A stretch of DNA of 64,000 nucleotides from NCBI GenBank assembly GCA_973895155.1, contig OZ316898.1:5071079-5135078 (forward strand), read 5' to 3'. Source of the DNA: Marsupella aquatica (lineage: Eukaryota; Plantae; Marchantiophyta). The notes under the pieces were generated by a model. It saw only the letters and a program-made list of their open reading frames with translations. It was not told the origin of the DNA and did not search any database. Shown here piece after piece: positions 6,604 to 62,759 of the stretch. Within the stretch, counting starts at the first letter, position 1, and the number at the start of each line of letters is the position of its first letter. The translations under genes and the position numbers were made by a program.

Positions 6604-9600
6604 ATGATCTTGGGCTGTGAGGGACTGGCCGACTATCACTGTGGGCTCCATAGCTTGGAGGTTCCTGTGACTAGTGGCACCGGGCTGCAACAGTCTACGT
6701 GCTCATTTGCTGCCCATGTTGGCTCCAAGTGTGGAAGGTGGAAAGCAGAGGATTGGTGCGAGTCAGGAGCTCTGTCTTCGGACGGGACAGGGATTTTTGC
6801 TGAGAATGCTCTGGTGAACAGTCCTGACAAGAAGGAAGAGTTAATTGGCGACAGTAGTGGGTTATGCCCTGATGATAGTGAAGGCATTGCCCTCTATATC
6901 GATCTGCCATGTTCACCCTGTAAGGATTCAGCAGAGTTTGCGTGCATAAAATCCCCCGAGCAATTTTTATTAGCAGAAGGACCAAAGGGAGGCACTGCCG
7001 GGCCAGCATTGGCGACAGGCTCACATGAGCAACTCAAGATGACTAGCCCACCGGAAGTCTCTCAAAAATCCGAATCAAGGAGATCCTCAAGTTTGAGTCT
7101 TCATGTACTGAGGGCTTTGTTGAAGACCGACAATGTGCCTAGGATTAAAAGACTGCGGCAGGTAACTGCTATTGATCAGAATCCAGAAAGTGCCTCTTAC
7201 ATGCTTAAGAAACCTGAAATATTGCCGAACTTGAAAATGTCTACAACACCAGTAAAAGATGGATTGGCGGAGAGTGTACAAGGCAAAGACGTAAAGGCAG
7301 GGCTAGCTGAGTCTAATTTTATGAAGGACTCAGGTGGTGATCAACATAGAAATTGCTGTCAAGGGGAATCTCCTTGTTTGATTGTAGAAAAGACTGAATC
7401 AAAGATTCCTTTAAATCTAGGAACACACGCGTTGAGGGCTCTGATCGAGGCCGACGATGTCCAGAAATTGAAGAGGCGCCGGTTGACAACTCCTGCAGAT
7501 TTAGCTTTTGTCAAGGATTCGAAGGATGTTTTACATGGAAATTCTCCAGACTTTGTGAGTAGGCAATCCAGTGATCTCCCTCTGGCAAAGGAAACCGAAT
7601 GCTCGGAAGAGTCCTTGCCAAGCTCGGACGCAGATGGACTTCCGGTCCGTAGAACCTCAGCTCAGAGTGACATTGCACAAAGTACCATGGACAACACAGG
7701 ATCTGGGGACTCCACCTCAGACGTTGCTTCAAGTGGGCTACTCAAGGGTAAGAGTGATACTAATAGTGATTCGAGTGAATCACCATCGCATTCCCATGAC
7801 AGAGAAACTTTAGATAAGTACATGACTCGGCCTCCTAGACTTTCTTCTGGAGGTTCTATAGGTGCCTTCTGTTCAAAGAAGAAAGAATGGTTAGGTCAGC
7901 ATCATGGTGGTAATAAAGGGGAAAGCGATAGTGGACAGGATAAGAGTTTTGCTGGGAATGTGGGAAAATGTTATCGATCAGCTATCGACAAGCGCCCTGC
8001 TGCACCGCATCCCGGTTTCGTTGGTGATGGAGCGAATGTGCAACTCTGCAGGGTCTGTGGAGAAAGAGAAGACGCAACAAGCTCTCTCATTTGTGACTCT
8101 TGTGAGCAGGTTTTTCACATGGGTTGTATAAACGTTCGAATGAAAATCATTCCACGAGTTGATGAGTGGCTCTGCCGACCATGTAAGAGGAAACGGAAGA
8201 TGTGCAGAGAAAGTGAGAACCAAGGTGACTCTGATGCTGGAGAGCCTAAGGATTGGTGGCGGGAAGATTCCCGCATTGGTAGAGTTGAGAGAGAATTATT
8301 ACGTATGAGCAATGGTCGAAGGATGAAAGTGCGGCTTGGACCCAAATTCCAGGCAGATGTTCCAGAGTGGACTGGCATAGTCGATGAGGTTGACCTGGAT
8401 GACAACCTGTGAGCACTTCAACCCCAATCACTTCTTTTAATTGTCAATTGCACGAGTCGAACGAAGAGACTTATTTATGTGGGCCGACTAGACCGTAGTC
8501 ACTGAGAGCACATCTTGTGTGTTTTCCAGTGCAGAAACTTCCTACCGTTTTGGAGAGGAGATTCCTCTCACTAGCGAGGAGAAGCGACTCAAACAAGAGA
8601 CTGCACAATACAATCTAGCGAATGTACGGGCTAAGTTTTTTTCTTGTTCCTCTTACTCCACTTTGGGTTGGATATCAACTACAATGAGTCCTATTCCGTT
8701 GGTTAAACTACTAGAAAATAGCTTCGTTTTCTGTGTAAGGGTCCTGGAGCTCTCTTGTTCTTATGATGGTTGGTTGCCTCTTTTGCAGGATATATGGCCT
8801 AAAGGGTGGTTGCCTGCTATTCAGCTTCCACCAGGCTCGAAAGAAAATTGGATTCAGTGCACTCTACTTTTGTTCGAAGAAGGCGAGATGTGTCTTGACG
8901 GCTCAACTGCAGAAAAAGATATCTTCTGTGGGAAATGGAGAAGGTGTTCTTCCAAAACAGTCCTAGGAACATTCTGAAGTTTCTGAAATCTGAGATGTCT
9001 AGACTTGTGATATGTCTAGACTGTTTTGGAAACTTTCACTCTGAAGGGACGATAACAAGTTTGAGTAGGTGATAGTTCATACAGACGGTGAAATCTAGAT
9101 TCAATTCCAGCTCACATCCAGTCTACCATCGTGTATAATCAGGTCTAGCTAAGACCTTAGTGTTGAAACCTATTATCTCACATGCAAGAAGAGCCTTCCG
9201 TCGATAATTCGAATAAGTGTTGTTGTGGATTTCATTCAATGTGTTTTTTAATCTTGGAATACACTAAGGATCTCCATCCAGATATCACTCTATGCTGGGC
9301 GGGATTTGTTTGGGACTTGTTAGTTAAAGTTTGGTAGTCCGTAATTGTGTACTAGAACATTTTTGGAGGATAATACTAGCCGCAGAAGAGGTCTCATAGT
9401 TGTAAATTTGGTCATGTCGTAACTGACCGTTGAATTTGTTTGCGCTGTTGCGTGGATGCCTAATTTCAGGGCTCCTTTAGGGATAGTGCCAAATGATCAG
9501 TGGGAATGTTCCTGCGCCCTTGTCTGGGATCCTCGGCATGCAGATTGTGCCGTACCCCAGGTCAGTTACTTCGCCTGCAACTTTAGCTTTCCAGCTTGAA

Positions 9601-9919: not shown

Positions 9920-12843
9920 TGTTAGTGATTTTTTCCACCATTTGAATGTGCTCAACACAATGTTATGTGAGATGGACGTGGCATTGTGGTAGCCTGGCTT
10001 TTTTGGGTCTGTTTTTACCGGGTTATTTTTAGTTCCCCCTAAATTCTGGTACGTTGGATGTTTTCTCTGTCTGCAGATGGATAATATGAATTCGTAACCA
10101 ATTTGGGAAGTGAATGCTGCAACGAAAGGACCAAAAGGGAGACCTGTTCTTTTTAATCCTACAGTAGCTGTCAGCCTTCCTTAGGTAAAGCTAACCTACT
10201 TCCCTTGCTGTTTCAGAGGTGCTCGGATTCACAGGTTGCTTTGAGTAAGTTTGAGATTCTCTAATGGGCTGCTCTCATGCATGAACAGCTAAATAAGCTG
10301 TCTTCCAAACATGTGGATGTAGGTTTATCGCAATCGTCGTCATTATGGCTGAGGTTATCCCAACCAATTTAAACCGAAGTCATGGTTTAGAATGAAGGCT
10401 TGTGGATGGATCCATGGGGAACTAGTCTTTGTCCAAGTTTTGGCAAAGACAGCTTTGCACATGATTTCACTGAATTGTTGTTGTACTGAAGATGTGGAGA
10501 TTTATAAGTGGTAGAGGTTTGGTTCCGAACTAAAGCAGCTGTTGTACTTCAAAGTCAGTTACGCCCTGTGTTGAAAACAGTAGGTTCCGTGAGCAATTGC
10601 AACTTTGTAGTTTGAAGGCGTGAAGGGGTGAATTTAAAGGCATCTCATACAGTACTTGACAGATTCTCTAATCAAAGCACAATGAAGCTGTGATTGTTTC
10701 ATCCCTGACGTTTAACTGCAGGTGGAACATCTAGTGGAGTGATTAAGGGATTTCATTGTGATTTTTTCCGACCAGGACCGTAAGGATGTTGCTGTCGGCC
10801 AAGTCGATAGTCTCAATTAATTCCACTTTCAGGAATCCAAGTAAGTGTGGAGTCCAAGTCGTTGATAGCATCCAAGCTGCTAACTGGTTATAGTTCTGTC
10901 TACATTGGGCTGTGCATCTGAATGTGCAAGTCGGCATTAGTGTTTTTCACCTACCCTGGCCCTGTGCGACATGACAACAAAGCCTAGGGTATTAAACTCT
11001 AACCACGTACAAGGAGTATGAGTAAATTCATTTGAATCCAACCCAGAAGACAAAGTTTCTCAGTTGATGAGCATTAATTCACCCAGTTGACCAGCACACG
11101 CTGTATGAGATGGCCAAGTTACTCCCTCGAATGAACTTGAGGAAGAATTTGACAGACAATATTTTAATGGAAGGCTTCAGCTGAGATCTTCTCTTGGGCA
11201 AGTAGTGATCAAAGTGTGTCCATTATTGACTACAATGAACCCTTCACGTCGCAATCCTAACACATGATTAGGAGAAACAATCGAAGGATGGGTTTGTTAG
11301 CCATTCAAGGCCTTGATGTGCATTTAACAAGGTCATCCCACGAAAATTCTCCAATTAAGGAAATAAAGTACTACTTGAGTCCATAGGGCTCTAGTACAAC
11401 AAAGAGTAGTCTAGGGCAGATTGAAAGTTTATTACCAACCCTTAGAGATCCATTGGCCGGACATCCACAGTGCACAGAAAGGCTTAACTATACATCAAGC
11501 CCACAGACCCTTCTGTCTTTAATCATTCACTGGCCATGACTGATTTAAGCTCACGGTAGGTTCTGCAAATGATACTAAAACAATCCAGTCCTCATGTGTG
11601 CTGGGAAGACGTGAATCAGCAACAAGTACGAGGTTTGGGCTGAACTGTAAGCTAAGAAAGCATTTCCGTCTCCAATGAAGTGCCCATGAAACTGAATGCA
11701 TTCGATCCTGATTTGGAAGATAGTCCAAAGTTCTCCAAAAATAACTCCATATTGACTTGGAGAAAAGCACTGTCATCCACCCCTGGTGAGTCTCTGTAAA
11801 TTGTATCTTTTTATGTTCATAAATCTGGAATTCCAAGGCAAAACGAAAGGACACTACTAGTGGAGAAACAAGTTACGGTGTCTTTCCACATTTCTATTTT
11901 GCAAAGGGGGGTTCTGCATCAGAATTGTTCTGGGGCTTGACCTGTACAGGTCCTCTGTCTTACAATCTGAGAAAAACCCTCAGATTTCATTTTTAACTTG
12001 AAAGGCACATTCATCATAAGCCCAGAACTATAATGTGAATACAATTGATGTAGTGAGTGCAATTTTAAGTCAAAACTAAGAGAGAAATGGACTTTGTGTC
12101 TACAAGTCATGGCCAAATCAAAGAGGCAGTGAACGTGTGATTCTCGCATTCACTAATTACTCCACATCTAAAACTGGCGCTCTCACTACTTTTGATCTTG
12201 CAAGCTCCTTGTTGTGGCTGCCAAGCTACTCGTCAATGAGTTTTGCTGGTTTTGATTCAAAGACGCATAATCTTGTTTGTTTATTACATTGTCTTGTTTG
12301 CTTATTACGGCAATTATATACACTCATGTTTGCGACTGAAAATGTTGACATGAGTGCATGTGGTGCCAGAAAATTTGTTCACTGACCAAAATCTAGTCAC
12401 TTGTAGCGGCAATTAAGATAATCAATTGCAGGCAAAACGTCAGTTTAGTATTGTGATGGGGGCCCAAAAATGGCCCCAAGCATTAGTGTCCACCTTATTG
12501 TCAAAACCTATGGCCCAACTTGCATGGGGCAGTCCTAAAGAATGCAGCCCTTAGCAGCAAAACCCTCAGCCAAAAGCAGATTTGGAGTGACAACATTATC
12601 TGCTGCCCTGCAATGTCTGCTTGGGTTTTATTATGAAATCATAGGTGGGGACCTCAATAGTTGGAAAGTTTCCAGGCCTTGCCCTTGGGATTCCAAAAAT
12701 ATTGCAGTCAGGCCTAGCACAGGAGGGGGTTTAGGCATGTAACTCTCGTTCACTCACATGTTATCATCTGTGAAGTTGAGTCCCACATTTTTCAGGACAT
12801 TGAATGCGAGTTGGGCCGAGTTCAGCCTTATTAATGTCACAAT

Positions 12844-15125: not shown

Positions 15126-15524
15126 ACAATACTATTATTGAGCATTTTAAGACCATATAATGACCACATCCCTTTGGTCACAGGCATGGTTTGTTATGTT
15201 AAAACCTAAAAGTCAGTAACGGTAGTTTGACCCGGTTCCATGTCCTGCTGCCCCCAACACTCCACAGAGGCTCCCAGATTGTCGGAGCCAAGGGGCTCTA
15301 TTTGGCGTCCATGGCCACCCTCGCCCTCGCCCTCACTCGATCCCGAGCTCCTTCAACGGTGGTCCGGTTACGCTCCGTCGAGTCGACGGTGAACCATGCC
15401 GTCACCAGACTACACAGTAGACTCCCCGGTTTGATGTGACGGGCAACTTGCCGAGTTGCCCGACACGTAAACTCGGCATTTGCCGGCCTGAAATGCTCTC
15501 ATTTGACGCATATTCGTCTTTATT

Positions 15525-16212
15525 CCCCGGCTCGACCCGAACTTCTCCCGGCCCGGCCCGAACTCCTCCCGGCCTCTTCCCGGACCCGGCCCGGCCCCCC
15601 CTACCTCTCGTCACCCGGCCCCGGCCCCGGCTTTACGCCCCGGCTTTAAATCCCGGCCCGACCCGGGTGGAGGAAGGCCCGGGTGGGGGGAGGGAGGAGG
15701 CCCGGCCCGGGTGGAGGGGGGCCCGGGTGGGGGGAGGGAGGAGGCCCGGCCCGGGTGGAGGGGGGCCCGGGTGGGGGGGTGAGGAGGCCCGGGTGGGGGA
15801 AGGGAGGAGGCCCGGCCCGGGTGGGGGGGGTGAGGAGGCCCGGGTGGGGGAAGGGAGGAGGCCCGGCCCGGGTGGAGGGGTGAGGGGGCCCGGGTGGGGG
15901 GGGAGGAGACCGGGTCGGGAGGAGGACGAGGCCCGGGTGGGGGGAGGGAGGAGGGCCGGCCCGGGTGGAGGGAGGCCCGGGGGGAAGGAGGCCCGGGTGG
16001 GGAGGAGGAGGAGGCCCGGGGGGGAGGAGGCCCGGGTGGGGGGGGAAGGAGGCCCGGGTGGGGGGAGGGAGGAGGCCTGGCCCGGGTGGAGGGGGGCCCG
16101 GGGAGGGGGGGGAGGAGGCCGGGTGGGGAGGAGGACGAGGCCCGGGTGGGGGAAGGGAGGAGGGCCGGCCCGGGTGAAGGGAGGGGTGGGAGGAGGGAGG
16201 CCCGGCCTGGGT
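15525..16212. repeat. Left subterminal GC-rich array (ggcccgggtggggg..ggaggag units)
   Basis: Dozens of CCCGG/CCCGGG cores. C-rich at 15525-15660, then G-rich at 15660-16212. Confidence 0.9.
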
Positions 16213-16434
16213 TAAGGGAAGATAAGCCTGGGTTTTAGAGTTATGGATAAACTCAATTGAGATAAGTCATATCTGCTAATTTGGGGTTGTGACGATTTCT
16301 CGCCTATCTAGTATTTCAACCCCGCTAAATATAGAATGTTTTTCCATTCTAAATTGTATAAAACTTTGAGTTTTTCTCATTAGACACACTTCACTAAAAG
16401 TAGAGCACTCTATGTAAAGAGATAGAAAAGACTT

Positions 16435-16830
16435 TTGTGCGCGCGTGCTTGGAGGTTTTACTCGGCATGTGGTAATCCGCATAATAACTTTTTTCTTATC
16501 CCTTAACATTTAGTGGTACTTGTGGGTATTGTGAAACAAATTTTGACAATGTTGACATTCATGTACGCATGTTTGGAGCTAAAGCTTGACATGTGATATT
16601 TTACATGATTATCACTAATTGTCTCATATGTTTTCACTATATCGGCAAATGCTCATTAAATTATAGATATCACATACGTCGGATAGGAATGTTAACAACC
16701 AGAAAACAAAAGAGAACCGCTGTGCGCATGTTTGGAGTTTGACTCGACATGTGATATTTCACAGTAGTTTTTTTTTCTCGTTTTATTGTTGTTACTTCAA
16801 AAGACTAACAAATAATCATTCAATTTTTAT
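16435..16830 (+). promoter_or_regulatory. Left internal inverted-repeat arm with three copies of a ~40-bp motif, upstream of the transposase
   Basis: Consensus gtrcgcatgyttggagttt..ctcgrcatgtgrtattt at ~16441, ~16562 and ~16722. It is the reverse complement of 21470-21860. The regulatory role is inferred. Confidence 0.7.
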
Positions 16831-16893
16831 TAAGTGACTATGTTTAGCGACGTATAAGAAGACACTTTGTGTGTAAAGTTCTTGTTTTCGATC

Positions 16894-19752
16894 ATGTCTT
16901 CCGAAGAAGATGAGTCGGGCAACTCATCAGCTCATTCTACTCCTGTTAGGCACGGTGGAAATCACAATCGAGATCGTAGTGCAAAATTTTCCCCAGTGTG
17001 GAAATATTTTGAACGATGTGATACGCCGTCAGCGTGTAATGATATTAATCGTATATATCGAAGATGCAAATTTTGCAAGAAATATACAACGCATCATGCA
17101 ACACGAGCAAAAGCACATTTGATGGGAAACATACACAAAGGAGATGCGCCACCTTGCACATGCTTGTATGGAGTTGTTGACTTAGATGACATCAATAGAA
17201 TGTACAATGTCATAAAGGTTGACCCATCCATAAAGTACAAACGAAGTGATGGAAGTCATGTTCTGTTATCCATGAGAGGTCGTAGGTCATATAACCCATC
17301 TTCCAATTCGTAAGCATCAACTCGAGACTCAAATTTTGTTGACCTCGATGAGGATGGAAATATGAGTCATCGAAGTAGAGCATCAAATTTTGCAAACCCA
17401 ATCATGGATGCTTATCAAATTCCAAATAGAGCTCATTTGGATAAGCTGTGGGCCAAAGCTTTTTATTCAAGTGGTATTCCGTTCAATGTGTCGGAGAATC
17501 CTTTCTTCCATGAAGCAGTCACAGAAACCTCGAAAGGGATTGTAAATGGATATTCTCTTCCGGGTATGCGAAATTTGAGAATGAAATTATTGGAGGAGGC
17601 TAGAGTTGATCTTACAAAGGACATGACAAAAACAATGAAGGAGGCAAAACCTTTTGGATATTCCCTTTCATCCGATGGATGGGAAAATATCTGAAGGGAA
17701 CCTTTGATGAATGTCATGTTGTTGAGTTCAAAAGGAGATTTCTTTTTGGATAGTTGGAACGCTGCACAAGCCGACAAGAAAGATGGGAAGTATCTTGGTG
17801 ACATGTGGTTAAAATACATAGATGATATTGGCGCCGATCACATCATACAAATTGTTACTGATGGGGCGCCTGCAAATCGTGTAGCAGGTGAAGAGATAGT
17901 CATGAAAAAATATCCGCATGTGACATGGAGTTGGTGTGTTGCTCACGTTTTTAATTTGTTGCTAGAAGACATGTGTGGCCACAAGAATGTAGTGCTAGAT
18001 GAGGGGAAAAAAAATCCATTCAAAATGATTTTTAAGCACTTGAGATGGATAGTTAAAGCAGTTACATCATCACAAAAGTTGTCTGCAATATTTGTGAGGA
18101 AATCTGGGGACAAGAAGTTGTTAAATCCAAATGCAACGAGATTTGCAACAAATTTTTTAATGGCGCAGAGAGCATTGGAGCTAAGAGGAGCTTTACAACA
18201 AATGGTCATTGATGACAAGTGGCAATCCTATCGTGATCGCCTGCCAGTTCGACCAAAGTCACAGGGGCATATGACGAGGGGAAAGGCAGACGAACTTAAA
18301 TCGTGGATACAGCAAGATACATTTTGGGCTCAAGTAAAATCTACAGTTGCTTTTTTCCTGCCGTTGGTAAAGATGTTGCGAGAATTCGATGGAGTTTCAC
18401 CACAGTCTCCTTGGCTATATTGGAGCTTGAAAAAAGGAATAGCTAAACTGGAGGCGAGCATGGAGGGTTGTACATTAGTAACAGATTACTTAAAACCAAA
18501 GATAATGAAAGTGTATATGGATCGACAAAATTCACTTACTACTGATTTCATGTTAGCAGCAGCATATCTGAATCCTCAATTTTTCTTCGATGAAGATGAA
18601 GATGTGGTAGGAGATGCAGAACTGTATAGAGGCTTCAATGATTACGTTCGTAGATATGCAGAACACAAGGTGAAGGCAGGAATCAACCATGATCGAGATG
18701 TGACGACACTTATTTCTGACATCCAAATGCAGGCATTTGAGGCTCAAAAAAATTTGCCAAATTCATCGGTTGCAATTAGAGGAGCACAATCGAATATTGG
18801 GAAATTAAGTCCAGGAGAGTGGTGGCATTTGTATGGAGCTGATTACGCGGAGCTAAGATTGATGGCGAGAAGAATCACGCATCAACAAATGTGTGCATCT
18901 TCATGCGAATGAAATTGGATTTCGTATGGCTTTATCCATTCAAAAAGCCGTAATAGGTTGACCAATGATCGGACAAAAGACTTGGTTTTTGTATTCACAA
19001 ATTCGAGGGTGCAAAAAGGGCTCACAAAGGTGAGAAACCCTCATACGTCTATGTATAGATGATATGAAGAAAGAACAATAACAAATGATGGCCCGAGGCC
19101 TACTTCCATAGAAGGATGTCACACTGAACAACATGGTGTTACATGTGCGGCTCTTGGAGAGGATGATGTGGAGGATTTTGATACAATTGATGACGCAGAT
19201 GAGGCTTTGCAAGGATTATCATTACACAATGATAGTCACATGTTGACTCGTATTCCACCAGATACTGAAATAAGTGATGTCGGAGAATGGGAAGATGAAA
19301 TGGATTTAATGATGTTCCCTACAATCGATGAGTCTCAAATTCAGGATGACGAGGACTACTCATTTGATGCAAACTTTGTAGTGCCTTCCCAACCAAACCC
19401 ATCCTTCACATACCCAACATTGAATCTACAAAATGATGTCCAAGCAAGTACTTCATACTTATTTCAACGACGAGGTGCTGCATCGGAGCTCTGTCCTGAG
19501 AGAACAACACCAACTTTGTTTGCGCAACCTGATGATGCACAGTGGGGACAACATGCTTCTCCAGCACAAAATATGTATGAAAGGCAGAACATGACAAATC
19601 CATACACATCAAGCATACATGCCCGTGTTGGGGCATTTCAAGAATATCATAGCGCAGATCCGGTCCAATGGATGACAAGACAATTTCAATTTGATCGACA
19701 GTTGCAAGAAAATGAGAACAATAACACAAGGCACTTTTTGTCACAACCTTGA
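16894..19752 (+). pseudogene. hAT transposase (BED finger, DUF659/RNase H-like core, C-terminal dimerisation domain) with four in-frame stops
   Basis: A single frame carries VWKYFER..RCKFCKK..RAKAHL (BED), SSDGWENI, IIQIVTDGA, CVAHVFNLLLED, NATRFATNF and EWWHLYG..CASSCE*NWISYGFIHSKSRNRL. Stops at 17311, 17692, 18910 and 19060. Confidence 0.93.
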
Positions 19753-19864
19753 CATCTGTTTAGGTATTACATGCTAGTACTATACGACAAACTATGATAT
19801 ACTATGCCGGATTGTGCATGTCCTATGCAATAAAATATGCTATACTAAACATTGAGTGTGCAAT

Positions 19865-21289
19865 CTACTCATTTCGGTTCTCATTGTCTTGCGCTTCTGC
19901 TTTCACCTCTGCCAGTTGCTGACAACGACGATGGCGACGAATAGATTGTTTTTGATACGCAACTGCTTTCTCTGTAGGGGTGGGCCACATTCGATTTTGT
20001 GGTAATGTGCATTGTGACTTGTGTTTGGACAACCCAAAATCACATATTCCTACATAAACTCTAATTGCCAAATCATCCCCGTGATCAAAGTGAAGAAGGA
20101 TGTTCCCAAAATGAAGATCACAATGGAAACGATCGTGTGCATGCAAATATTGCAAGGTCTCCAATAGAGCCATAGCAATCCCCAAACGATGTTCCAAAAA
20201 GAGTTTCTTTTCGGATATGAATGTCACATCAACCTCAGAAGTGGATTGTGTCTTCCCTTTGCTCTTACTCCATTTCCCACATTTATCTATGAAACTTCCC
20301 AAGTCACCTCCATTGTAATGGTCATAGATAAGTTTCGGTGGATCTTCGATAGTCATTGCCAAGGCCCCAATTATTCCTTTGTGATTCAAACCTCCCATGA
20401 GCACTTCTTGTAAAGCATCTGTTCGTCTCTTGTGCCGGTCTCCATCCTTAAATCGTTTTGCAACCAGTGTTGCATTTCGAGGAATCAATGGGCAATCCAA
20501 TATATGACATATGAACACATGTCCTTGGATGCCGCTTCCAATGCGATGCAAATTCGATACTTGCTCCCTCCTCAAGAAATGAATACTCCTGACCATGAGA
20601 ACAACTCGTGATGGACGCGTTCCTCTATCTGCAACCTCCACGCCAATCTCTCCAAACTGCACGACCTTGCTCGCATATTTGACATTACTCTCCGATTTGG
20701 CCATTGCTAACTCTTTGCTCCATTTAGCTAGCAAATCTCTTCTATGTGTGTATAGCCCAGGAACTCCAAGCATGACGGCCCCAGCCTCATCCAAATTGGA
20801 TTCCAACTTGTCCCAAAGATTCACCGCAAAATTCAACGCCAAATGTTCAACAAATCCACCCGGCTTCTCAAAATCACTTATTAAGGAAGCAATTTCATCT
20901 CGGGTTATGTCCTCTTCTTTCTCCACAATCTCACGCATGCAACGTCCCATGTCATTTAAAAGGTTTTTGTAACCCTCTGCTCCATGCATAGCATATTTCC
21001 TCTCAAAGCCATCCTGCTCATACTGTGCTGGCAAAGTGTAGGGATATAGAATCTTTTTCCAAATTGCAACTAACACATGTTGCCTTCTCTCTTTCAATGC
21101 AGCACCAATTGCTCCTCCTCTATGTTTCCGTTTCCCTAAGATTTTACCATGTTTACAAATTTCTAAGGTTTTGTGAGCATTCCTTAGAGCATTGAGAGCA
21201 TGAGGATCTGGTTGGTATCCCTCGTTTAGCATGGTCTTCATTGCCTCAAAAAGTTTCATATACTCTACACTCACATTTGCAGCGGCCAT
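19865..21289 (-). CDS. Transposon-borne non-RD protein kinase-like protein (long uncharacterised N-terminus; kinase appears truncated after DFG)
   Basis: Uninterrupted ORF, likely start MAAANV at 21289. Gly-loop IGSGIQGHV, VAK lysine, alphaC LQE, catalytic loop HCDLHFGNILL and ICDFGLSK are present. No APE motif or subdomains IX-XI are seen. Confidence 0.82.
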   Translation of the reverse strand: MAAANVSVEYMKLFEAMKTMLNEGYQPDPHALNALRNAHKTLEICKHGKILGKRKHRGGAIGAALKERRQHVLVAIWKKILYPYTLPAQYEQDGFERKYAMHGAEGYKNLLNDMGRCMREIVEKEEDITRDEIASLISDFEKPGGFVEHLALNFAVNLWDKLESNLDEAGAVMLGVPGLYTHRRDLLAKWSKELAMAKSESNVKYASKVVQFGEIGVEVADRGTRPSRVVLMVRSIHFLRREQVSNLHRIGSGIQGHVFICHILDCPLIPRNATLVAKRFKDGDRHKRRTDALQEVLMGGLNHKGIIGALAMTIEDPPKLIYDHYNGGDLGSFIDKCGKWSKSKGKTQSTSEVDVTFISEKKLFLEHRLGIAMALLETLQYLHAHDRFHCDLHFGNILLHFDHGDDLAIRVYVGICDFGLSKHKSQCTLPQNRMWPTPTEKAVAYQKQSIRRHRRCQQLAEVKAEAQDNENRNE

Positions 21290-21469
21290 GTTCTCAAGTA
21301 ACCACAACAAGTTGTAGGACAAAGAAAAGGCGCTTACGGAGTGTGTTGGCTGCTTGCCGAGGGTATGGATGATGCAAGTACAATAAAGCTGGATCAAGAA
21401 TCCTGAAATATCATTTCACACTTTGTGTTGGTACCAATAATACCCAAGCAATGAAATTTTAATATTTGT

Positions 21470-21860
21470 TCAATTTTTTATTCGTTTGTTTAGTACTTTG
21501 AAAGTAACAACGATGAGGGGGAAAGATAACTATGTGAAATACCACATGCCAAGCCGAAACTCCAAGCATGCGCACAAAATATGTCTTTTCCATCAAGTTG
21601 TTACATTCCTATTCCAATCTATGTGAAACCTATAGTTTAGATGTCATTTGTAAATGTTGTGAGAATATTTACAAGGAATCGAGATATCCATGCAAAATAC
21701 CACATGCCGAGCGGAAACTCCAAGCATGCGTACATGAAAATCTCTATCCTAAAAAATACTCCACTCAATTCACAAATCACACTAAACTGTTAAGGCGATA
21801 TTAGGTTCTCTCATACGAAATACCACATGCCAAGCATAAGCTCCAAGCATGCGCATACGT
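21470..21860 (-). promoter_or_regulatory. Right internal inverted-repeat arm with three copies of the same motif, upstream of the kinase
   Basis: aaataccacatgcc(a/g)agc..aactccaagcatgcg(c/t)a at ~21537, ~21695 and ~21818. The spacer sequences also align with the left arm. Confidence 0.7.
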
Positions 21861-22089
21861 GAGAACACTAATATCCCTCCAAATTAAAACTAAATGTTAA
21901 AGTCATACATGACAAAGCATAGCAAAAAAAAGACCGAAAATAATTCAAAAACGAATGAACTAAACTCAAAACAAAGCAAAACATAAGCAAAAGCAAGAAA
22001 AACTTACCAAAGGTCTCTCCTACAAAACAAGCAAACTTAGTAATGAGAAGTGACTAATGAGAGAAAGTGAGGAGACCTCCTCACTTTAT

Positions 22090-22600
22090 AGGCCCGGTCC
22101 CGGTCTGCCCCCCCCACCTCGTCAGCCGACCCCGGGTGGCCGAGCCCGATCCCCCCCGGCGGCTGCCCTCCTCTCGCGTGACCTAACCCTAAAGTCCCCC
22201 CCGGCCCGGCCCGGCCCGGCCCACCCCACCCCCGCCCGACCCGGGCCCACTCGGGCGGGGGTGGGCCGGGGGGCTTTAGGGACCGGGGCGGGGCTTTAGG
22301 GACCGGGGCGGGGGGGCGGGGGGGGGGGGCGGCTTTAGGGTCCGGGCCGGGAGGGGGGGGCTTTAGGGTCCGGGCCGGGAGGGGGGGCTTTAGGCTCCGG
22401 GCCGGGAGAGGGGGGGGGGGGCCTTTAGGGTCCGGGCCGGGGGAGGTTTAGGGTCCGGGGTCGGGAGGATGAAGGATCCGGGGTCTGGGCCGGGGGGGTT
22501 TAGGGTCCGGGGCCGGGAGTACTCAGGCCGGGACCGGATTTACTCGGGCCGGGACCGGATGATGCCGACCGGGAGAGACCGGGTGTCGGCTTGCCGGTTG
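22090..22600. repeat. Right subterminal GC-rich array containing TTTAGGG units
   Basis: ctttaggg(t/a)ccggg units at about 22275, 22295, 22334, 22362, 22424, 22447 and 22499, a variant at 22389, and ccctaaa at 22187. Confidence 0.9.
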
Positions 22601-22964
22601 ACGGCCTTAAAACGGCCTATTTGCCGGGCAAGTCCAAACCGGGGTAGACTCACTGCACCGCAGTAGACACGGTGCACCACAGTAGACGCAGTGCCCTCTT
22701 GTTCAGCAAACAGTGGGTGAAGCTTTTGTTCATTCTTCTGCAGCTTTCTCATGGAGAAGAAGTCCGGCGCCCCCTTCTCTCTCTTCCTCTCGCACTCGTG
22801 TACATCTCGCTCGCTCGTATCACTGAAATTGATGCCCCCTGCTGATCTCTTCCGAGTCTTGGTCACTGCTGCACGCTCTGTTTCAGTGTGCCGTTCATTG
22901 AACCATTCACTTTGGACTCTCTGGAGGTTTGCGGGCGGTAGGAGGCGAACGGCGGGCTTCGACA

Positions 22965-27735: not shown

Positions 27736-30700
27736 ATGCAGTTCCAGCAGAGTGTGTTGCTGGCAGGGACTGCTAGGCCATGGCAGGGCATCAGCAGCTG
27801 TACCTGTTCTCTCGCTCACCTCCGGGTTTTACCACAGCGTCCACGGTCCTCTTCTCTACTCGGTGCTTCACGATTTGGGAGATTTGGGGCGTCAACTGTG
27901 AGGCCTTTCCGCTCTCCGAATAAATTCCAGCCGCAGAAGAGAGCTCGCTCGGTGCTGGGGGTGCGCTCAGCTGCTGCCACAGGAGGAGCAGGGGTGCTTC
28001 CAGCTCAAAACGGCAGCAGCAATTCCAGCGTTGGCAAAGCGGATTTACCTGAGCCGCCCGCCGACGTGGGTCTGAGAACTGTGAGTTAGAACGCAATTCC
28101 CAATCTGGAGTTAACAGCAAACTAAGCTGATCGTGAAAGGAAAAAAAATGAGGCACAGGGATTCTGTGACCACATTTTGGGATACTTTTGGAGGATTGCA
28201 TGTACCAAAAGGGTTTTCTTCAATTGCTTGGATGTTTTAGGGACAATTTTGGGCGCTTGATGGATTTGGAACACTGGGGCATGAAATTAGTTCATTTGTG
28301 GCCGTGAAATTGTTCAAACGTGGGACATGGAATCGGCAACTGTACCAGGGTTGGACTTTTTAGGAATTGTGTTGAGTGTAGTGTGTCCCAGAGCAAGTTG
28401 TGGAGCACTATGTGCGCAACACCTAGCCAATTTGTTGAGTAATGGGACTGTCCACTGCTGTTTGAATATTCGAGCGCATGTGAACGTGCTCGTTGGTGGG
28501 AATTGAGCATGGGAATATTTAAAAAAAACTCTGATTATGAAATTGAACATGCTGTGCATTAATTGCCTCAGAATTGAACATGATCTGTTATATGTAGAGT
28601 GAATTTTCACCCCAACATCTTGGGAATTCCTATGTGCGGCTTCCAAAGCTTGTTCCTAGGATATATATTAATCAATTTCGACACGAAAATGTATTCTTCT
28701 CAAAGGACTAGTAAGGATGTGTTCTTCGCTGTTTGAATTTTGGGTCACTGTCATGCTCAGTATCGCTTTGAAACCAAACCTGGATGCTTACGACTAAAAT
28801 CCAGATTTAGAGATTTGGATACTTAAATGCATATGAAGGTGACGCAGGGCTCCTGGGGTGCCTAGAATTCAGCCTCTCCTCATTTTGGATAAGTGTGTCA
28901 GCCATTGAACTTTGAGATTTAACGTCTGCAATTTTGGATCATAATTTGAACAGGCTTTGCCTTACGTGTGGAATTTGGCCGCGGGGGAGAGCACGTTGAG
29001 CTGGCGTTTGATTGTGGCCCTGGTCTTACTGGTGATCAGCAAGGTAATGTTGTTTTTGAGTCGTCCACATAAATGTTCAGTGAAATGTCTTTGGAGTTAG
29101 GCTATGCGTCTTATACAGAAGTATGGGGTCTGATTATTTTTACGGAGGGCTGTTGCCCCTCCACTGGATAGTAGTCGCTTACTCGTCACAATGAGTAAGG
29201 GAGCTAGAAGACTAATGAAGTTAGGATGAGGAAGGGAGCTGAATGGGTCTTTATATGAGTACCATATTTGTTGGTTTTGTGATCGATTTTTGGCTCCCGG
29301 ATATTAAGATTATTCCAAACTATCTAGCTTCTCGTACAACTTGTAAGCGAATGTCAATTAAAATCGATATGGAGGTGGTATCCCTTACATGTTCCGAGGA
29401 GATAGGACTGAATACGTGATGATTTAGCTAAAATATGAAATACTTTAATAGCCTCTTAATTTTCTGCTAAGTAAGATTGGGTCATGGGATGTGGACTGTT
29501 GTGTTAAAGTCAGATTGGCAATCGCTTGTACCACCATGTCTAGCCAGCTGGTGTACATTTGGCCTGACGAGTAAAGAGGGTTTGGATTTAGAAGGAATTG
29601 GTTAGAACTTCATGGGGAGTGACACCGACTTTTACAGGGTTCTTCCTCTTTTGCGTGTGTTATCGTGACTGGAAATGCTTGTTCTGACTCATTCTGGATG
29701 AAGCAGGCGGCTGGGCTTGCTGGACCAGTTTTCTTCAAGAGAGCTATGGATGCTCTTTCACAGGTCCCAGGAACCGTGTTATCCAAGGAGGCGATGCATG
29801 GAGCTGTTCTTATTCTCGTGCTTGCAGCTATAAGCAAAGTAAGTGGAATCTCACGATGTTTTGGTTCTGGATTTAGAAACAGTTCTCCTGTTTTTGGTGA
29901 TTGTCTAACGCATTCAAGTCAGGTTGATATTTCAAGAGTAAAAGAGCTTGTTGAAAAATTGAAGAATGCCTGTTATATTTTACCATCGTCGAAGCATTCG
30001 TTCTTTCATTGTCTCCGAACTCAACTTCTGGTTTTTTATCCTTTGCTTGGGAATATCTCTTTTAAAACACATGGCTTCCCTGCCGCAATCTATTTTCTTC
30101 AAGAGTTGTCCACATCCCAATGCTAGGGGACAGTGTTTAGCTGTTCAGGTTTTGGGTGTGAATTATGCTCATTCCATTTTGAGGTTTTCGAGTGCATGTA
30201 AGGTGTCTAAAGATATGATTAACACCGACCACTGCTCATGTGCCCATATCGGATGGCAGGCTGTTAGTGCTGGGCTTAATGAGCTTCGGTATCTAGTGTT
30301 TGCCCCACTGGGTCAGTTAACAGGAAGACGAGTAGGTGTGCAATTACTTGATCATATCCTTCGACTGGATCTGGCCTTCCATCTGGAGCGCAAGACTGGT
30401 GCTCTTACCCGCATACTTGACCGAGCCCAGCGAAGCGTAGTAAATATTTTTCGAGCTGTAGGTATGTTTACATTGCGTTCTACCAAGACCCTCGGCTTGC
30501 ACAAAATGTTTATTTTATTTCCACTATTCGAACCTATGCATGTCATTCTCATGTCCTGTTTTCCTCGATCGCTTCTCGTCATGAACTTCTGGTACTTCAA
30601 TATTTTAGATGAGTGAACCGACCAGTCGGAAGATGTTTGTCTCACTTTGAAAGGTTGAACCAAAGAATTATAGTCAACTCAATATTTGCCCAGCTAACTG

Positions 30701-56827: not shown

Positions 56828-59800
56828 ATGGGCAAGATGCCCGTCAATCCCAACGAAGGGGAAATGGCAGGGGAGTTCGAACCTTTCCAAGAAAGCAGAC
56901 CCAGACTTGAGGCCGAAGAACGAATCGAGAATTCAAGGACTCAAGATAAGGTCGAAGAAAACCTGGAAGAAGCCATGGAACGACTTAAAATCCACCAAGG
57001 AGCTGGTAGTAGTTCAAGATCGGCTCCTACCAGAAGGGTTAAAATACCCATGTTCAAGGGAGCACCTGATGAAGATGCCGATACCCACTTAGCACGTTTC
57101 AAAGAAATGCTCAGAGCTAACCACGAACAGAACGACACAGCCCGATTAGAGCTGTTTCTCAGCTCGCTGGACAAGGAGGCTTTTGTATGGTACACTCAAT
57201 ACCCAGCTGACCATTTCAAAACTTGGCCTGATTTTTCAAAAGAATTCTTATTCATTACAGAAGGGCTAAGGAAGAGTCTGATTTGTATAGCATTCTGCAA
57301 AACATGACTCAGAAGAAAGGAGAACCAGTACAGAACTATATTGGACGGTTAAAGGTAACAATGAGATGATTAACAAATAAACCGTCCGATGGGCAACGAA
57401 TTAGCTGGATGAGGAAGGCTGTGAAGGGGAGTCTAGTCACAGTGGTGGAACAAAATCCCACTTCTAATGCTGATGAATACGAGAAAAGATTAATACGGCT
57501 AGAGGGCATTACTCAGATGCTTAACCAGGAAAAGAACGAGAGCAGTAAGGACGAAGAGAGGGTTAACCGGAAAATAGAAACTTCTAAGGTAGAAGTCAAG
57601 GAAAACCGAGAGCGGGGCGAGGTTAGTACTCATAAATTCTGTGAAATACATATGAGGCCTGGACACACTACTCAGGAATGCAACCAAAATCCTTTTAAAA
57701 AGAAACCTAGCCTAGGTGTAAATCAGGTAGGAACAAGCAAAAAAGATGGGGATAGGATGAGAGTAGCCAGGGATATTACAATCCTGATCGTAACGCAAAC
57801 CGAAGGCCTTATAAGGATGGTGGGGCTAAATACCCACCGATTTGCTATTTCTGTCGACTAACCGGCCACATCAGGGGCCCCGATTGTGAATTATGGATGA
57901 AGCATATGAAAGAAAAGGAAGAAATAGCGGGGAAAGCCCCAGCACCTGTGAACACTGTGCAGGTGTTGACATACGTGGTGACAAGATCTCAGGGGCAGCC
58001 AGAGGACTCAACCCCAACCAATCCCACGGAGACTGAGGGAGGATTCGATTGGAGCCAAATGGACGCAACCACACGAGAAATAGCGGATGAAATTCACCAC
58101 AAACAGCAGAACGAGACGCTGCCACGGCTTGAACGATTAATGCGTTCAGAACCTTACGCAGAGACGGATACTGAAATTCTAGAGGAGGGAGTGATGATGG
58201 GGGGATTCGATCAAGAAACGGGACAACTCCCACGAGACGAAGAACCACCGAATAACCCTGCCGAAGTGAACCAGCGAATAGTGGATAAGCTAGTGCAACT
58301 CATCGCGAAGACCAGAGTCGACATCACTGTCGAGGAACTGTTCCAGTTAGCACCATAGTGCAAGGAAGCAGTAATGAGACGGTTGGGAGGCAGAATTAGT
58401 CCTACCACACTGCCAGGGGTACCACTGTACCAAGCTGGGAAGATTCCCCTGATCGACAAAGGAGCCGTAGTACAGATCAGCGTAAGGGGCATCAAACTGA
58501 AGAACGTATTGCTGGATGGAGGGTCAGCCGTAAACCTCATGAGTGAGCAAACCTACAGACTGCTAGGCAGAGTCAAGCTCTTACCGGCCCCTTTTAATCT
58601 AGTAATGGCCGATCAAAGTAGCTGTCACCCACTGGGTTACGTGCCAGACTTACCAATGCTGATTTCAGGCATCAAGTACAATTTAGGAGTGGTAGTTTTG
58701 AGAGAAGCAGATTCTACCCAAGGACAACCCATGTTGTTAGGACGACCTTGGCTAAGACAGGCCAAAGTAAAACAACATTGGGGGGAAGAAAAGGATTATA
58801 TAAAAATAGAACATAGAGGAGAGACCTTCAAGATCAGGACCAAGGCCATCAAAGACTGTGTACCACCTATGGCCAGAGTCTGTACTTTGAACTGGGCAGA
58901 GGGGTTGAATGAGGATGAAGAAGAGACCTATTTAAAATGCCGTCCAGACTTAGTACCAATTTCAGATATGGAAATAGTCAAGCTCGACGAGATGCAAGGA
59001 ATGACCAGAGAAAAGATGGATCATGATCTACGAAACGATCTGTTTAAACACATAGACCCGCAAGGCATTCAGGAGTGCTCGTTAAAGGAGGAAGAAGCAC
59101 AGACCACCTTGCAGGATCTAGCAGAGAAAGTGGTGGGATGGAGTGCCACCGAGGAAGAGCACATTCAGAAGGTTGATTTGAGTGACACCGAACGACCGCG
59201 AGAAGTAAAGATAGGAAAACACCTTTCCCCCGACCTCAAAGAGGAACTTGTTACACTACTCGCCGAATTCCGAGATGTTTTTGCCTGGGATTACACGGAG
59301 TTGAAGGGAGTACCAGAGTCAATTGGCGTACATCGAATCCGACTCGTACCAGGGTCAGTACCGGTGCAAACGCAACGATATAGGATGAACCCCAACTATG
59401 CGGAAAAGGTCAAAGAAGAAATCCAAAGGCTCCTTGATGCCAAATTCATTGAACCCGTTAAGCGTTATACATGGCTATCTCTGATAGTCGTAGTACCTAA
59501 GAAAAATGGGAAGTTGAGAGTCTGCATTGATTTCAGAAAATTAAACGCAGCTACCATAAAAGACCCTTTTCCAGTACCATTTCTAGAAGCAGTTCTGGAT
59601 GTGGTAGCAGGAAAATCAGCTTATTCATTTCTAGATGGGTACAGCGGGTACAGTCAGGTCCGGTTAGCAACAGAAGCGAGGGAGCTAACCACTTTCATTA
59701 CGGAATGGGGCGCTTTCCAGTGTCTCGTATTACCCTTTGGATTATGCAATGGGCCTAGTACATTTCAGCGATTAATGATGATGTTATTTCATGAGTATTT

Positions 59801-62759
59801 GAATCAGTTTATGCAAATCTTCCTGGATGACTTCACCATATACGGAGAGGAAGAGTAACACATAGGCCACCTCAGATTATGTCTCTTAAGATGTAGGGAA
59901 GGGGGAGTCAACCTGAACCCTGATAAGTGCACCTTCTTTGTACCATCGGGCAAGATATTAGGACACATAGTTTGTAAACAAGGCTTGTTAGTAGACCCAG
60001 ATAAGATAAAAATCATTAAAGAGATGCCAGTCCCCAATAGTGCAACCCAAGTCAGAAGGTTCCTGGGAAGTGGAGGTTTCTATCGTCGTTACATCAAGAG
60101 TTACTCCCAAATCAGTGCCCCGTTGGCACGATTAACGGGTAACCATCAAACGTTCACTTGGGACGATGACTGTCAAAAAGCGTTTGAAGAAATCAAGGAC
60201 CGGTTGTGCCATGCACCCATACTCAAGGAACCAGATTGGAAGAAGGAGTTCCATCTACATACAGATGCCTCTCTGGTGGCGGTGGGAGCGGTGTTGGCAC
60301 AGAAGGGAGAACAAGGTATCGATTTACCAGTATACTATGCCAATAGACTGTTAAACGTGCATGAAAGGAATTACACTACGACCGAGAGAGAAGCGTTAGC
60401 CATGATATTTTCCGTAAAGAAATTCAGGCATTATTTACTCGGTAATCGCTTTGTGTTTTATGTAGACCACAATGCCTTAGTCAATTTGGTAAACAAACCG
60501 CAGTTGTCAGGCAGAATAGCAAGGTGGATTTTACTGCTAGCAGAATTCAATTACACCATCATTTATAAACCAGGGAAGACCCATGTTATACCCGATTATC
60601 TTAGTAGATTAGAGTCAGGAGAGACCTGTAAGGAAGGGGATGATCAATTGCCTGATATGGAGTTATTCCAAGGTGATCAAGAGACATACCATGTAAAACT
60701 GGTCACCTTAGATGATGAACCGGCGTTAGAAAGGTATTTACGCACAGCAGAATACCCCGATGGGTTATCCAATAAAGAGAGGAAAATCTATGCATACAAG
60801 GCGAGGCCCTATACTTTAATCAACCACGTGCTTTATTACAAAGGGCCGGATGATATACTACAAAGGGTCATCCCAGAAGAGGAGAAGCAGGAAGCCTTGA
60901 TCGCGGCACATGAGGGGCTAGGCGGAGGACATTTCGGCACCGAAATCACCATTAGGAAGATTCTGCAGCAAGGACGCTGGTGGGCAACGATCCATAAGGA
61001 CACTCGGGAGTTTGTGAAGACTTGTGATTTGTGTCAGCGAACGGGCCCAATAAAAGAAAACATGGAATTCCGGCCCATAATAGCGCCGTACATCTTCCAG
61101 AAATGGGGATTGGACTTCATCGGGCCCATTACCCCACCTTCCAGGTATAGCCAGAATCAGTATATTTTGGCAGCAACGGAGTACACGACGAAATGGGTAG
61201 AGGCAGTCGCAACTCGCGACAACACCGGGTGAGTAACGGCTAAGTTCATATATCAAAACATCATTACGAGGTACAGATTACCGGGGGAATTGGTAAGCGA
61301 TCAGGGGTCGCACTTCATGAACAAGGTCATCCAGGAGCTAACCGACAACTATCATATAAGTCACCGGTTCTCAACGCCCTACTACCCAGAGTGTAACGGA
61401 CAAGCAGAATCGACGAATAAGATTCTACTCAATGTTTTACGGAAAGTGATTAACAACCAACAGAACGATTGGGACGTTCAGCTACCCGCCGCAGTATGGG
61501 CATTCCGAACGGCGTATAAGGTAACCACGGGCCACACTCCCTTTCAGTTAATGTTTGGAGTAGAAGCTCGTATGCCAGCAGATTATGAACTTCCCAGTCT
61601 GCAAATCGCCATTGGGTACGACATTAATCATAATCCATCTTTAAGCAAACGATTAAGAACATTACTGGAGGTAACCGAAACCCCAAGGAAGGCTGAAGAA
61701 TGATTAGAATACGTACAAGGACAATGCAAACGACGGATAGACGATCAACGGGATGTCACCACGTTCACTGAAGGAGAATTGGTACTTTGGTGCCGGAAAA
61801 GGGCACGCATAAAAAAAAGGAAGTTAAGACTTAAGTGGGAAGGGCCTTTCACTATACTCAAGGTATGGGGGAATGGAACCTTCGAAATTGCTAGCCAGGA
61901 CGGCAGCGAGCAGCAGCTGGTGAACGGGAACAAAATGAAGACATATCACGTTAGAAACGATGTGTACTTGCGGGAGGTAGAAAGCGCGGTTAACGACTAC
62001 CTGGACGAAGACGACGGCGGAAATGACCACGATGCAGTACCAACACGGGCCGAGGATAGCGACCGCTATCAACCGTTAACAGCTACAAGAAACCGAAATC
62101 AAGTAGGGTTAGGGGAGTACCAATCATCTCCCAGAGTCGTGGCTTGTATAAGCGTGGCTCCCTACCCCGCAGCGGCAAAGACCACAGAAGGGGAAGAACT
62201 ACCGACGCACACAGGACCGTCCTTGGCTCGCCCGGCCAGGCCAAGTACCACCTCTAACCACTATCGACAGCAGCGAAGGGACCGAACAAACAAACAAGTA
62301 CGGACAGCAGCGATTAAGGGATGTACGCTAGCAGATTACGTGAATGAAGTAGTCCCATCAAGCGGACCGTTTAGTTCAGCGAAGACAAGCCAAATCAAAT
62401 CAATTGTACTAGCAGCAGAAGATCTATTGGAAATATTTCAAGTTCATGATTGGAAATACAAACTAACGAAAGGACAGGAAGAAGAGCGGGAACGATTTCC
62501 GTATAGGGTAGTGATCGTAGGGTGTACTCACGGAAAATCATCCACCTGGATTGTGGATCGGATACTGATAGGACCTAACTCAATACCGTGCATAGAGAAC
62601 TACGCCATGGGAAAATTACATGTGCTTCTAAAAGCTTACGAGACGGGGGAGTCCGAGAATCAAATACCCCTATCAGCGAGGGAGTTGCTAAGACGGAAAC
62701 CCTATTTGCGGTTGGCGCTGAAGCTACGAGCGACTGCAGAGTGGAGCGGCTATCAGTGA
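56828..62759 (+). pseudogene. Gypsy gag-pol polyprotein with frameshifts and in-frame stops, and a long post-integrase extension
   Basis: Gag IPMFKG..DADTHL..AFVWY; knuckles CEIHMRPGHTTQEC and CYFCRLTGHIRGPDC; protease LLDGGSAVN; RT FLDGYSGY and FLDDF; RNase H TDAS; integrase [24 protein letters not shown] and WEGPF. Stops at 58356, 59856, 61230 and 61701. Confidence 0.93.

Follow-up and report, generated by a model that had tools for sequence, protein, structure and literature searches.

A kinase frame facing a hAT transposase in Marsupella aquatica: a probable deleted copy of a three-gene liverwort transposon family

Introduction

hAT elements are textbook one-gene transposons, so a protein-kinase reading frame lying inside one, face to face with the transposase, raises the question of whose gene it is. 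The locus in question lies in a stretch of 64,000 nucleotides from the liverwort Marsupella aquatica (assembly GCA_973895155.1, contig OZ316898.1, positions 5,071,079 to 5,135,078 of the forward strand), and this whole stretch is what we call the window, with position 1 as its first letter. A preliminary description, made from the letters and a list of open reading frames (ORFs), had proposed a two-gene hAT family whose kinase is a stable component of the transposon. We find instead that window 15425-22643 very probably holds a dead element, internally deleted, from a liverwort hAT family with three genes, which encode the transposase, a divergent TKL-like kinase, and a ubiquitin-ligase-like RING-H2 protein. 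The kinase gene of the window is a chimeric relic within a dead transposon, and not a host kinase. The related loci used for comparison include 4 from the Calypogeia fissa assembly GCA_965154635.1 (L001, L005, L009, and L010), a Logan contig (L002), and an ENA contig (L003).

Results

The kinase frame ends in another gene

The minus-strand frame has 474 codons and carries a Pfam protein-kinase match (PF07714) of 52.5 bits against a cutoff of 23.1, covering only profile positions 3-152 of 263. Its full-length relatives have 540-636 aa and run through LAPE to a conserved ...NSPYLRD end, both present in P0003, P0004, P0009, and P0159. The window kinase parts from these relatives after ...AYQKQ, and tblastn homology stops at 19946. 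By DNA alignment, window 19945-20298 matches the L009 kinase at 18124-18477, and window 19893-19950 aligns with the 3' coding end of the RING gene at L009 15814-15871. The 2 matching segments overlap in the window by 6 bp, ATTGTT, and 2,258 bp are absent relative to L009, a loss that includes the kinase C-lobe and almost the whole RING gene. The last 26 residues of the window frame, SIRRHRRCQQLAEVKAEAQDNENRNE, are the C-terminal tail of the RING protein, in that the string SIRRHRRCQQLAEVKAEA... matches the RING C termini of L009 (...RSIRRHRQRQQQLEVKAEANDINNK), L002 (...RSIRAHRRRQAMRERD), and L010. The frame therefore joins, in phase, kinase codons 1-448 and the final 26 codons of the RING-H2 gene.

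Retained termini, a missing internal segment, and microhomology at the junction, as found in deletion derivatives, are all seen here. Contigs from elsewhere agree with this: in run X5, from a third organism with sequences ~96-97% identical, 2 contigs leave the window sequence at 19945/19946, one from each side, into unmatched sequence, as would be expected of a copy in which the missing segment is still present. One contig of run X1 joins 19575 to 20559, skipping 983 bp; it may come from another deletion derivative of the family, in the window genome or a related one.

The preliminary description had placed the transposase stop at 19752 on the plus strand and the other stop at 19865 on the minus strand, and both are where it put them. 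The 112 bp between them are equally real, but because it is the RING gene that ends at 19865, this gap is the natural spacing between the transposase and RING stops and is not a distance between kinase and transposase. An intact intronless kinase is not supported for this copy, since the C-lobe is missing and the final 26 codons come from the RING gene. Lacking that lobe, the 474-aa chimera is very unlikely to be active as a kinase.

Related copies hold three genes

The C. fissa loci found through the kinase and those found through the transposase alone have the same arrangement (Table 1). The kinase is in the same position, convergent with the transposase, in 4/4 C. fissa hAT copies, so that the co-occurrence in relatives that had been proposed as a check is there. 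In complete copies a third gene, for a RING-H2 protein of ~620-650 aa, lies between the two, and it is on this point that the two-gene family gives way. Kinase and RING genes are separated by only ~50-220 bp. In L010 both termini enclose all 3 genes. As predicted from these layouts, the complete form of the family is 3 intronless genes in the order transposase -> <- RING <- kinase.

The kinase family is narrow. A word-indexed search gave 10 homologues, and a search among 1.84 billion representatives gave ~35 strong matches followed by generic kinases. The transposase lineage is equally narrow. All named matches are from the liverwort C. fissa. Within these limits the family is abundant: more than 1,000 contigs of run X1 match the element, in all identity classes, with comparable summed depths over the kinase and the transposase, and the kinase is found in high copy number across public runs from 3 organisms. 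A single-copy kinase, a syntenic host gene, or copies of the transposon without the kinase, any of which the preliminary description would have taken as fatal to its proposal, were not what we found.

From RING stop to transposase stop, the spacer measures 112 bp in the window, ~680 bp in L002, and 2.2-4.4 kb in the C. fissa copies, where it is rich in internal direct and inverted repeats and varies in length from copy to copy. Locus L009 has at ~11490-12100, between the transposase and RING genes, an extra terminus of the transposase-side type, CCAGGTTTGACGTGTCGGGCAA..., on the minus strand and ending at 12097. This lies inside a ~500-nt insertion that is common to L001 and absent in L010, and it is probably a nested fragment or miniature inverted-repeat transposable element (MITE) of the same family.

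The three genes share their descent

Pairwise ratios of nonsynonymous to synonymous divergence (dN/dS) were computed by NG86 with stop codons counted as gaps. For the kinase, dN/dS is 0.10-0.30 in deep pairs, 0.44-0.49 at dS ~0.35, and 0.54-0.65 in the youngest pairs. The transposase and RING genes exhibit a similar rising trend with scatter, the RING deep pairs going up to 0.45 and the young L001-L009 pair being at 0.32-0.34. Taking all 3 genes over deep and mid-depth pairs, dN/dS is ~0.1-0.45. A trend of this kind is the signature that selection in active lineages would leave when followed by decay after insertion.

The copies pair in the same way in all 3 genes, L005 with L010 at dS 0.03-0.04 and L001 with L009 at 0.07-0.11, with the window copy outside at dS ~0.9 or more from the C. 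fissa copies. In the kinase tree, the window sequence, P0001, and the C. fissa hAT copies form a clade (100/99) with the same inner pairs. Hence the transposase, kinase, and RING genes are, to judge from these comparisons, inherited as one unit under purifying selection. The tests that had been suggested for the kinase, of dN/dS across copies and of agreement between genes, come out in its favor. With its recurrent convergent position, high copy number, purifying selection, and shared pairing, the kinase qualifies as a heritable component of this hAT lineage, as had been proposed. Window and C. fissa sequences have diverged more rapidly in the kinase than in the transposase (~58% versus ~72% protein identity, dN ~0.32 versus ~0.17).

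The transposase of the window copy is a pseudogene

Four plus-strand ORFs share one frame, and window 16867-19752 can be translated as 962 codons with in-frame stops only at 17311 (TAA), 17692, 18910, and 19060 (all TGA). The C. fissa copies have CAA, CGA, CGA/CAA, and CGT at these 4 positions, with L009 carrying CGA at the codon matching 18910, and run X1 contigs from other copies have a C at 17311. Because the relatives carry these codons, all 4 stops are C>T changes, 3 of them at CpG, which is the fate expected of a methylated, silenced copy. Introns were considered and rejected, as the pieces lie in one frame and are split solely by single stop codons. An autonomous transposase is accordingly not supported for this copy.

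Its affiliation is still readable. Pfam gives DUF659 at E = 4 × 10−20 on the plus strand, and protein identity to the C. fissa copies is 64-75% over the full length. The hAT dimerisation domain (PF05699) scores weakly in the window piece (E = 0.0095), because the TGA at 18910 breaks its conserved CE(R) motif. The domain is present in the close homologues P0164, P0166, and P0168. A zf-BED match at E = 0.052 is below cutoff.

Element ends and insertion site

The element is 7,219 bp long. Its terminal inverted repeats (TIRs), CCCGGTTTG, are 9 bp long with a 9/9 inverted match, 15425-15433 against 22635-22643, and direct reading of the sequence finds an 8-bp target site duplication (TSD), GTAGACTC, identical in 8/8 positions on the 2 sides. 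The ends were fixed by homology with 4 independent C. fissa termini (L001, L005, L010, and the transposase side of L009). Homology among these and the window termini begins at CC(C/A/G)GGTTTG. The first 100 nt of the left end have 78% identity to the transposase-side end of L010, and at the other end TTGCCCGGCAAATAG is kept at the kinase-side end of L001 and L005, with one mismatch in L010. L010 is the C. fissa copy with both ends inside the fetched locus, and there the same register gives a TSD of CTTCTAGG/CTTCCAAG, 6/8, both differences being transitions.

The preliminary description had the convergent pair of ORFs between inverted termini and GC-rich subterminal arrays, which the ORFs, Tandem Repeats Finder (TRF), and Pfam all bear out. 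The ends themselves it had put at CAGT, 15415 and 22655, and this was an error, as the CAGT strings are TSD plus flanking sequence. Ends at 15415/22655 leave no TSD (AGACTACA versus CACCGCAG), and a 6-bp TSD, TAGACT, was dropped after the 8/8 register was found. The target of insertion is a host 19-bp minisatellite, GTAGACACAGTGCACCACA, at 22644-22694 with 2.7 units by TRF. Its CAGTAGAC strings mimic the left flank of the element, and it was these extra strings that misled the earlier placing of the ends.

Base composition rises to 64-65% GC at both element edges (~15.4 and 22.7 kb). Two "ORFs" in this region, 15436-16215 (259 aa) and 15894-16238 (114 aa), are spurious frames within the GC-rich minisatellite array rather than genes. 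An 8-bp TSD is a hallmark of hAT elements, and with the dimerisation domain, DUF659, and short TIRs it makes the window element a member of the hAT superfamily, although its TIR tip is CCCGG and the usual hAT YARNG tip is absent.

Mirror-image arms precede both transcription units

Upstream of the transposase and upstream of the kinase there is an arm with 3 copies of a 12-nt motif, GCATGCTTGGAG (Table 1). The left arm is a 71% mirror image of the right arm, and the motif spacing is mirrored too, being 124/159 bp on the left and 158/123 bp on the right. Allowing up to 1 mismatch, the motif occurs within the 64 kb only inside the element, as the 6 arm copies and a one-mismatch match at 20775 in the kinase remnant. 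We estimate the chance expectation in 64 kb at ~0.3. Upstream of the kinase and/or the transposase it is kept in 9/10 related loci, L002 having none, and it also precedes the kinase of a C. fissa subfamily that has no hAT transposase nearby (see below). This suggests that the arms are a shared promoter or enhancer module that would coordinate the expression of both transcription units.

The kinase and RING proteins

The kinase retains a GxGxQGxV Gly-loop, the beta3 Lys in VAKRF, the alphaC Glu in ALQEV, the catalytic Asp and Asn in HCDLHFGN, and CDFG. With these features the full-length members are plausibly active. The best sequence matches among solved structures are Roco4/LRRK-type TKL kinases (PDB 4yzm and 4f0f, E = 2.5 × 10−9), and a fold search with the predicted structure returns tyrosine and TKL kinase domains. 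From the Roco4/LRRK type it differs by having only ~20% identity, HCDLHFGN in place of HRDLKxxN, and an added N-terminal domain of ~190 aa. This domain is helical and family-specific, with a predicted local distance difference test (pLDDT) score of ~85-90 over residues 57-188. It has no convincing fold match (Foldseek E > 0.3; best VIA Z 5.7, in a range common for helical bundles) and no usable match in Atlas.

The middle of the RING protein is a coiled coil, and a pattern CxWC-x14-CxHxWHxxC-x10-CxC is kept in 6 copies. The expected RING-H2 pattern is C-x2-C...C-x-H-x2-H-x2-C...C-x2-C, from which the last pair, CxC, departs. Its Atlas neighbours are RING clusters at 0.83, which we take only as a lead, and in the homologue search for this protein the query itself was the sole match.

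Table 1. Coordinates of the features of the window element and of the related loci
Feature	Sequence	Position	Strand	Remarks
Left TSD GTAGACTC	window	15417..15424	.	identical 8-mer at 22644-22651; register from homology of C. fissa termini
Left TIR CCCGGTTTG	window	15425..15433	+	followed by subterminal GGGCAA/TTGCCG palindromic motifs to ~15520
Left GC-rich subterminal minisatellite array	window	15526..16205	+	periods ~21-51 bp (TRF); GC 0.64
Left arm	window	16441..16812	+	372 bp; GCATGCTTGGAG at 16443, 16567, 16726; upstream of transposase ATG
hAT transposase pseudogene	window	16894..19752	+	single intronless frame of 952 codons; four nonsense codons
RING-H2 gene remnant	window	19865..19945	-	last 26 codons and own stop (19865-19867); tail of the chimeric ORF
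Internal-deletion junction	window	19945..19950	.	6-bp microhomology ATTGTT
Kinase remnant, codons 1-448	window	19946..21289	-	N-terminal helical domain, N-lobe, HCDLHFGN catalytic loop, DFG; APE and rest of C-lobe deleted
Right arm	window	21485..21854	-	GCATGCTTGGAG at 21571, 21729, 21852; upstream of kinase ATG
Right GC-rich subterminal array	window	22057..22560 (about)	+	TRF; GC 0.65
Right TIR, CAAACCGGG as plus strand	window	22635..22643	-	TTGCCCGGCAAATAG directly before it
Right TSD GTAGACTC	window	22644..22651	.	doubles as first unit of the host 19-bp minisatellite
Copies found via kinase	C. fissa L001, L005			kinase -> RING -> ... <- transposase
Copies found via transposase alone	C. fissa L009, L010			transposase -> ... 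<- RING <- kinase
Copy found via kinase	L002 (Logan contig)			intact 636-aa kinase, intact 624-aa RING protein, convergent transposase tail
Copy found via kinase	L003 (ENA contig)			intact kinase and RING, then contig end
RING-transposase spacer	C. fissa L001	13113-17306		non-coding
RING-transposase spacer	C. fissa L005	13409-17778		non-coding
RING-transposase spacer	C. fissa L009	11443-15873		non-coding
RING-transposase spacer	C. fissa L010	11140-13370		non-coding
Second kinase subfamily, ~7-kb unit	C. fissa L004	9212-16139		one of four chromosomes
Second kinase subfamily, ~7-kb unit	C. fissa L006	9280-15700		one of four chromosomes
Second kinase subfamily, ~7-kb unit	C. fissa L007	2834-7230 and 9207-16287		one of four chromosomes
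Second kinase subfamily, ~7-kb unit	C. fissa L008	9145-15850		one of four chromosomes

Elsewhere in the window there are Gypsy-type retrotransposon pol ORFs (reverse transcriptase, RNase H, and integrase zinc finger) at 58374-62759 near the right end, and a PHD-finger ORF and an ABC-transporter fragment (6604-8412; 29966-30616), which is ordinary context for a plant genome.

Discussion

How the locus came to be and what else it might be

In the history that we favor, the window copy arrived by ordinary hAT insertion, which left the 8-bp TSD. An internal deletion mediated by microhomology, of the kind by which Ds elements derive from Ac, joined kinase codon 448 in frame to the last 26 RING codons, and the transposase decayed by the 4 C>T nonsense mutations. 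Set against this history is the possibility that the window has the propagating form of a genuine two-gene hAT family, with an intact kinase 112 bp from the transposase. The perfect TSD and the open 474-aa frame of the window copy speak for it, as does the high summed depth of the junction bin 19738-19928 in runs X1 and X2, by which the deleted form may itself have been copied in a Ds-like manner. We nevertheless regard a two-gene family as improbable, for the ORF ends in a RING tail and its kinase is without a C-lobe, the RING gene is present in all other copies examined, and the transposase has 4 stops. At that stop density, finding none in 448 kinase codons is not unusual (estimated P ~0.15).

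The other alternatives concern where the kinase came from. Host gene fragments are often captured by plant DNA transposons, and the truncation of the window kinase would suit a Pack-type capture, in which the element picked up a piece of a host gene once, by transduplication, and has no use for it. A fragment so acquired should hardly form a narrow kinase family on a very long branch, intronless and multicopy, under purifying selection and with the same copy pairing as the transposase. The cargo position is conserved across copies, the homologue search found no host-gene counterpart, and wherever there is enough flank the kinase is either beside a RING gene and a hAT transposase or inside the ~7-kb repeated unit of the second subfamily. 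To this origin we give the least credence of all. Scarcely easier to credit is a nesting of elements, whereby the kinase and RING genes are those of a separate mobile unit, lodged within a transposase-only hAT or adjoining it. A C. fissa kinase subfamily in a ~7-kb repeated unit without hAT or RING nearby is what such a unit might look like, and the terminus-like sequence in L009 at ~12097 lies where a boundary could be sought, between the transposase and RING genes. That sequence, however, is within a ~500-nt insertion that L010 lacks, and the kinase-RING block has no TIRs or TSD of its own around it. All genes of the window copy and of L010 lie inside the outer termini and the TSD, transposase and kinase have the same motif arms upstream, and the 3 genes diverge concordantly across copies.

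The reading of the locus as a deleted copy of a three-gene family has points against it as well. All the C. fissa hAT copies examined are themselves decayed, the only intact ORFs for kinase and RING are those on the short contigs L002 and L003, and the element was found in no RNA run. The deletion is reconstructed from the break points of contigs and from copies in a different species rather than from a complete copy in the window genome. The Pfam scores of the RING are below curated cutoffs (zf-RING_2 at 22.4 bits versus 27.3), and dS is saturated for the deepest pairs. Lastly, no hAT transposase or RING gene lies within 10 kb of the second C. fissa kinase subfamily (L004 and L006-L008), so that the kinase occurs outside this hAT family too, and the kinase module has moved between contexts. 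The ~7-kb unit of that subfamily holds other conserved ORFs without Pfam domains, such as L004 11987-12586, 13312-14763, and 18143-20167; the last of these, encoding a ~670-aa protein downstream of the kinase, has no similarity to the RING protein and no Pfam domain.

Comparison with known systems

The nearest model is Ac/Ds and other plant hATs, with which the window family shares a transposase having the dimerisation domain and DUF659, an 8-bp TSD, short TIRs, and subterminal repeats. The generation of non-autonomous derivatives by internal deletion with microhomology, as in the window copy, is likewise familiar from Ac/Ds. The departures are that kinase and RING-H2 genes are added on the opposite strand, whereas classical hATs encode a transposase only, that the TIR tip is CCCGG rather than the usual CAG/TAG type, and that there are GC-rich arrays of kilobase scale and mirror-image arms on the promoter sides.

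In the maize element MuDR, the mudrA and mudrB units are convergent and each is driven from its own element end by near-mirror-image sequences, and in this layout the window family resembles it. MuDR is of the Mutator superfamily, with a 9-bp TSD and a mudrB that is neither a kinase nor a RING protein. The window element is not a member of that group, its transposase being of the hAT/DUF659 and not the MURA type and its TSD being 8 bp and not 9-11.

Accessory enzymes do occur in DNA transposons of fungi, namely TET/JBP in hAT7 elements and, in IS3EU elements, an alpha-kinase oriented opposite to the transposase (PMC12730594). These resemble the window family in that an accessory enzyme is stably encoded, and they differ in having fungal hosts and in the enzymes being a dioxygenase and an atypical alpha-kinase. 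In the window family the host is a land plant, and a conventional eukaryotic TKL-like kinase is paired with a RING-H2 protein. As a functional model for what the kinase and RING protein might do, the VANC proteins come to mind. These are anti-silencing proteins of the Arabidopsis VANDAL (Mutator-like) elements and bind DNA sequence-specifically (PMC10398659). VANC too is an accessory protein that serves the element rather than catalysing transposition, but it is not an enzyme pair and has no sequence relationship to the kinase or the RING protein.

Full-text searching of the literature turned up no hAT element described as having both a protein kinase and a RING gene. To that extent the family appears new in pairing a conventional kinase and a RING protein with a hAT, while accessory genes in DNA transposons are already known and the window copy is an ordinary dead derivative.

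A possible role, and what the family means

The kinase and the RING protein may serve as a joint accessory module that aids the propagation of the element. The most likely mode would be phosphorylation and ubiquitination that mark either the transposase itself or a host protein with a part in silencing or repair. In its specific form the proposal is that the module is co-expressed with the transposase by way of the motif arms and marks a host silencing, chromatin, or repair factor for degradation, so as to protect or promote the element. We put this forward tentatively and think it rather unlikely to be right as it stands. If true, the module would be to a plant transposon what kinases and RING ligases are to large DNA viruses, which turn them against repression by the host.

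For annotation, the lesson is that the "kinase gene" of the window should not be taken for a host kinase. For the biology of the family, a hAT lineage in the window genome and in C. fissa keeps a kinase and a RING-type protein under selection, with both transcription units wired to the same upstream motif. A signalling and ubiquitin module of this kind joins a short list of accessory functions in DNA transposons, which has VANC, TET/JBP, alpha-kinase, and Myb-like proteins on it. Should the module prove to act on silencing or repair in the host, the family would offer a tractable system for transposon counter-defence in bryophytes.

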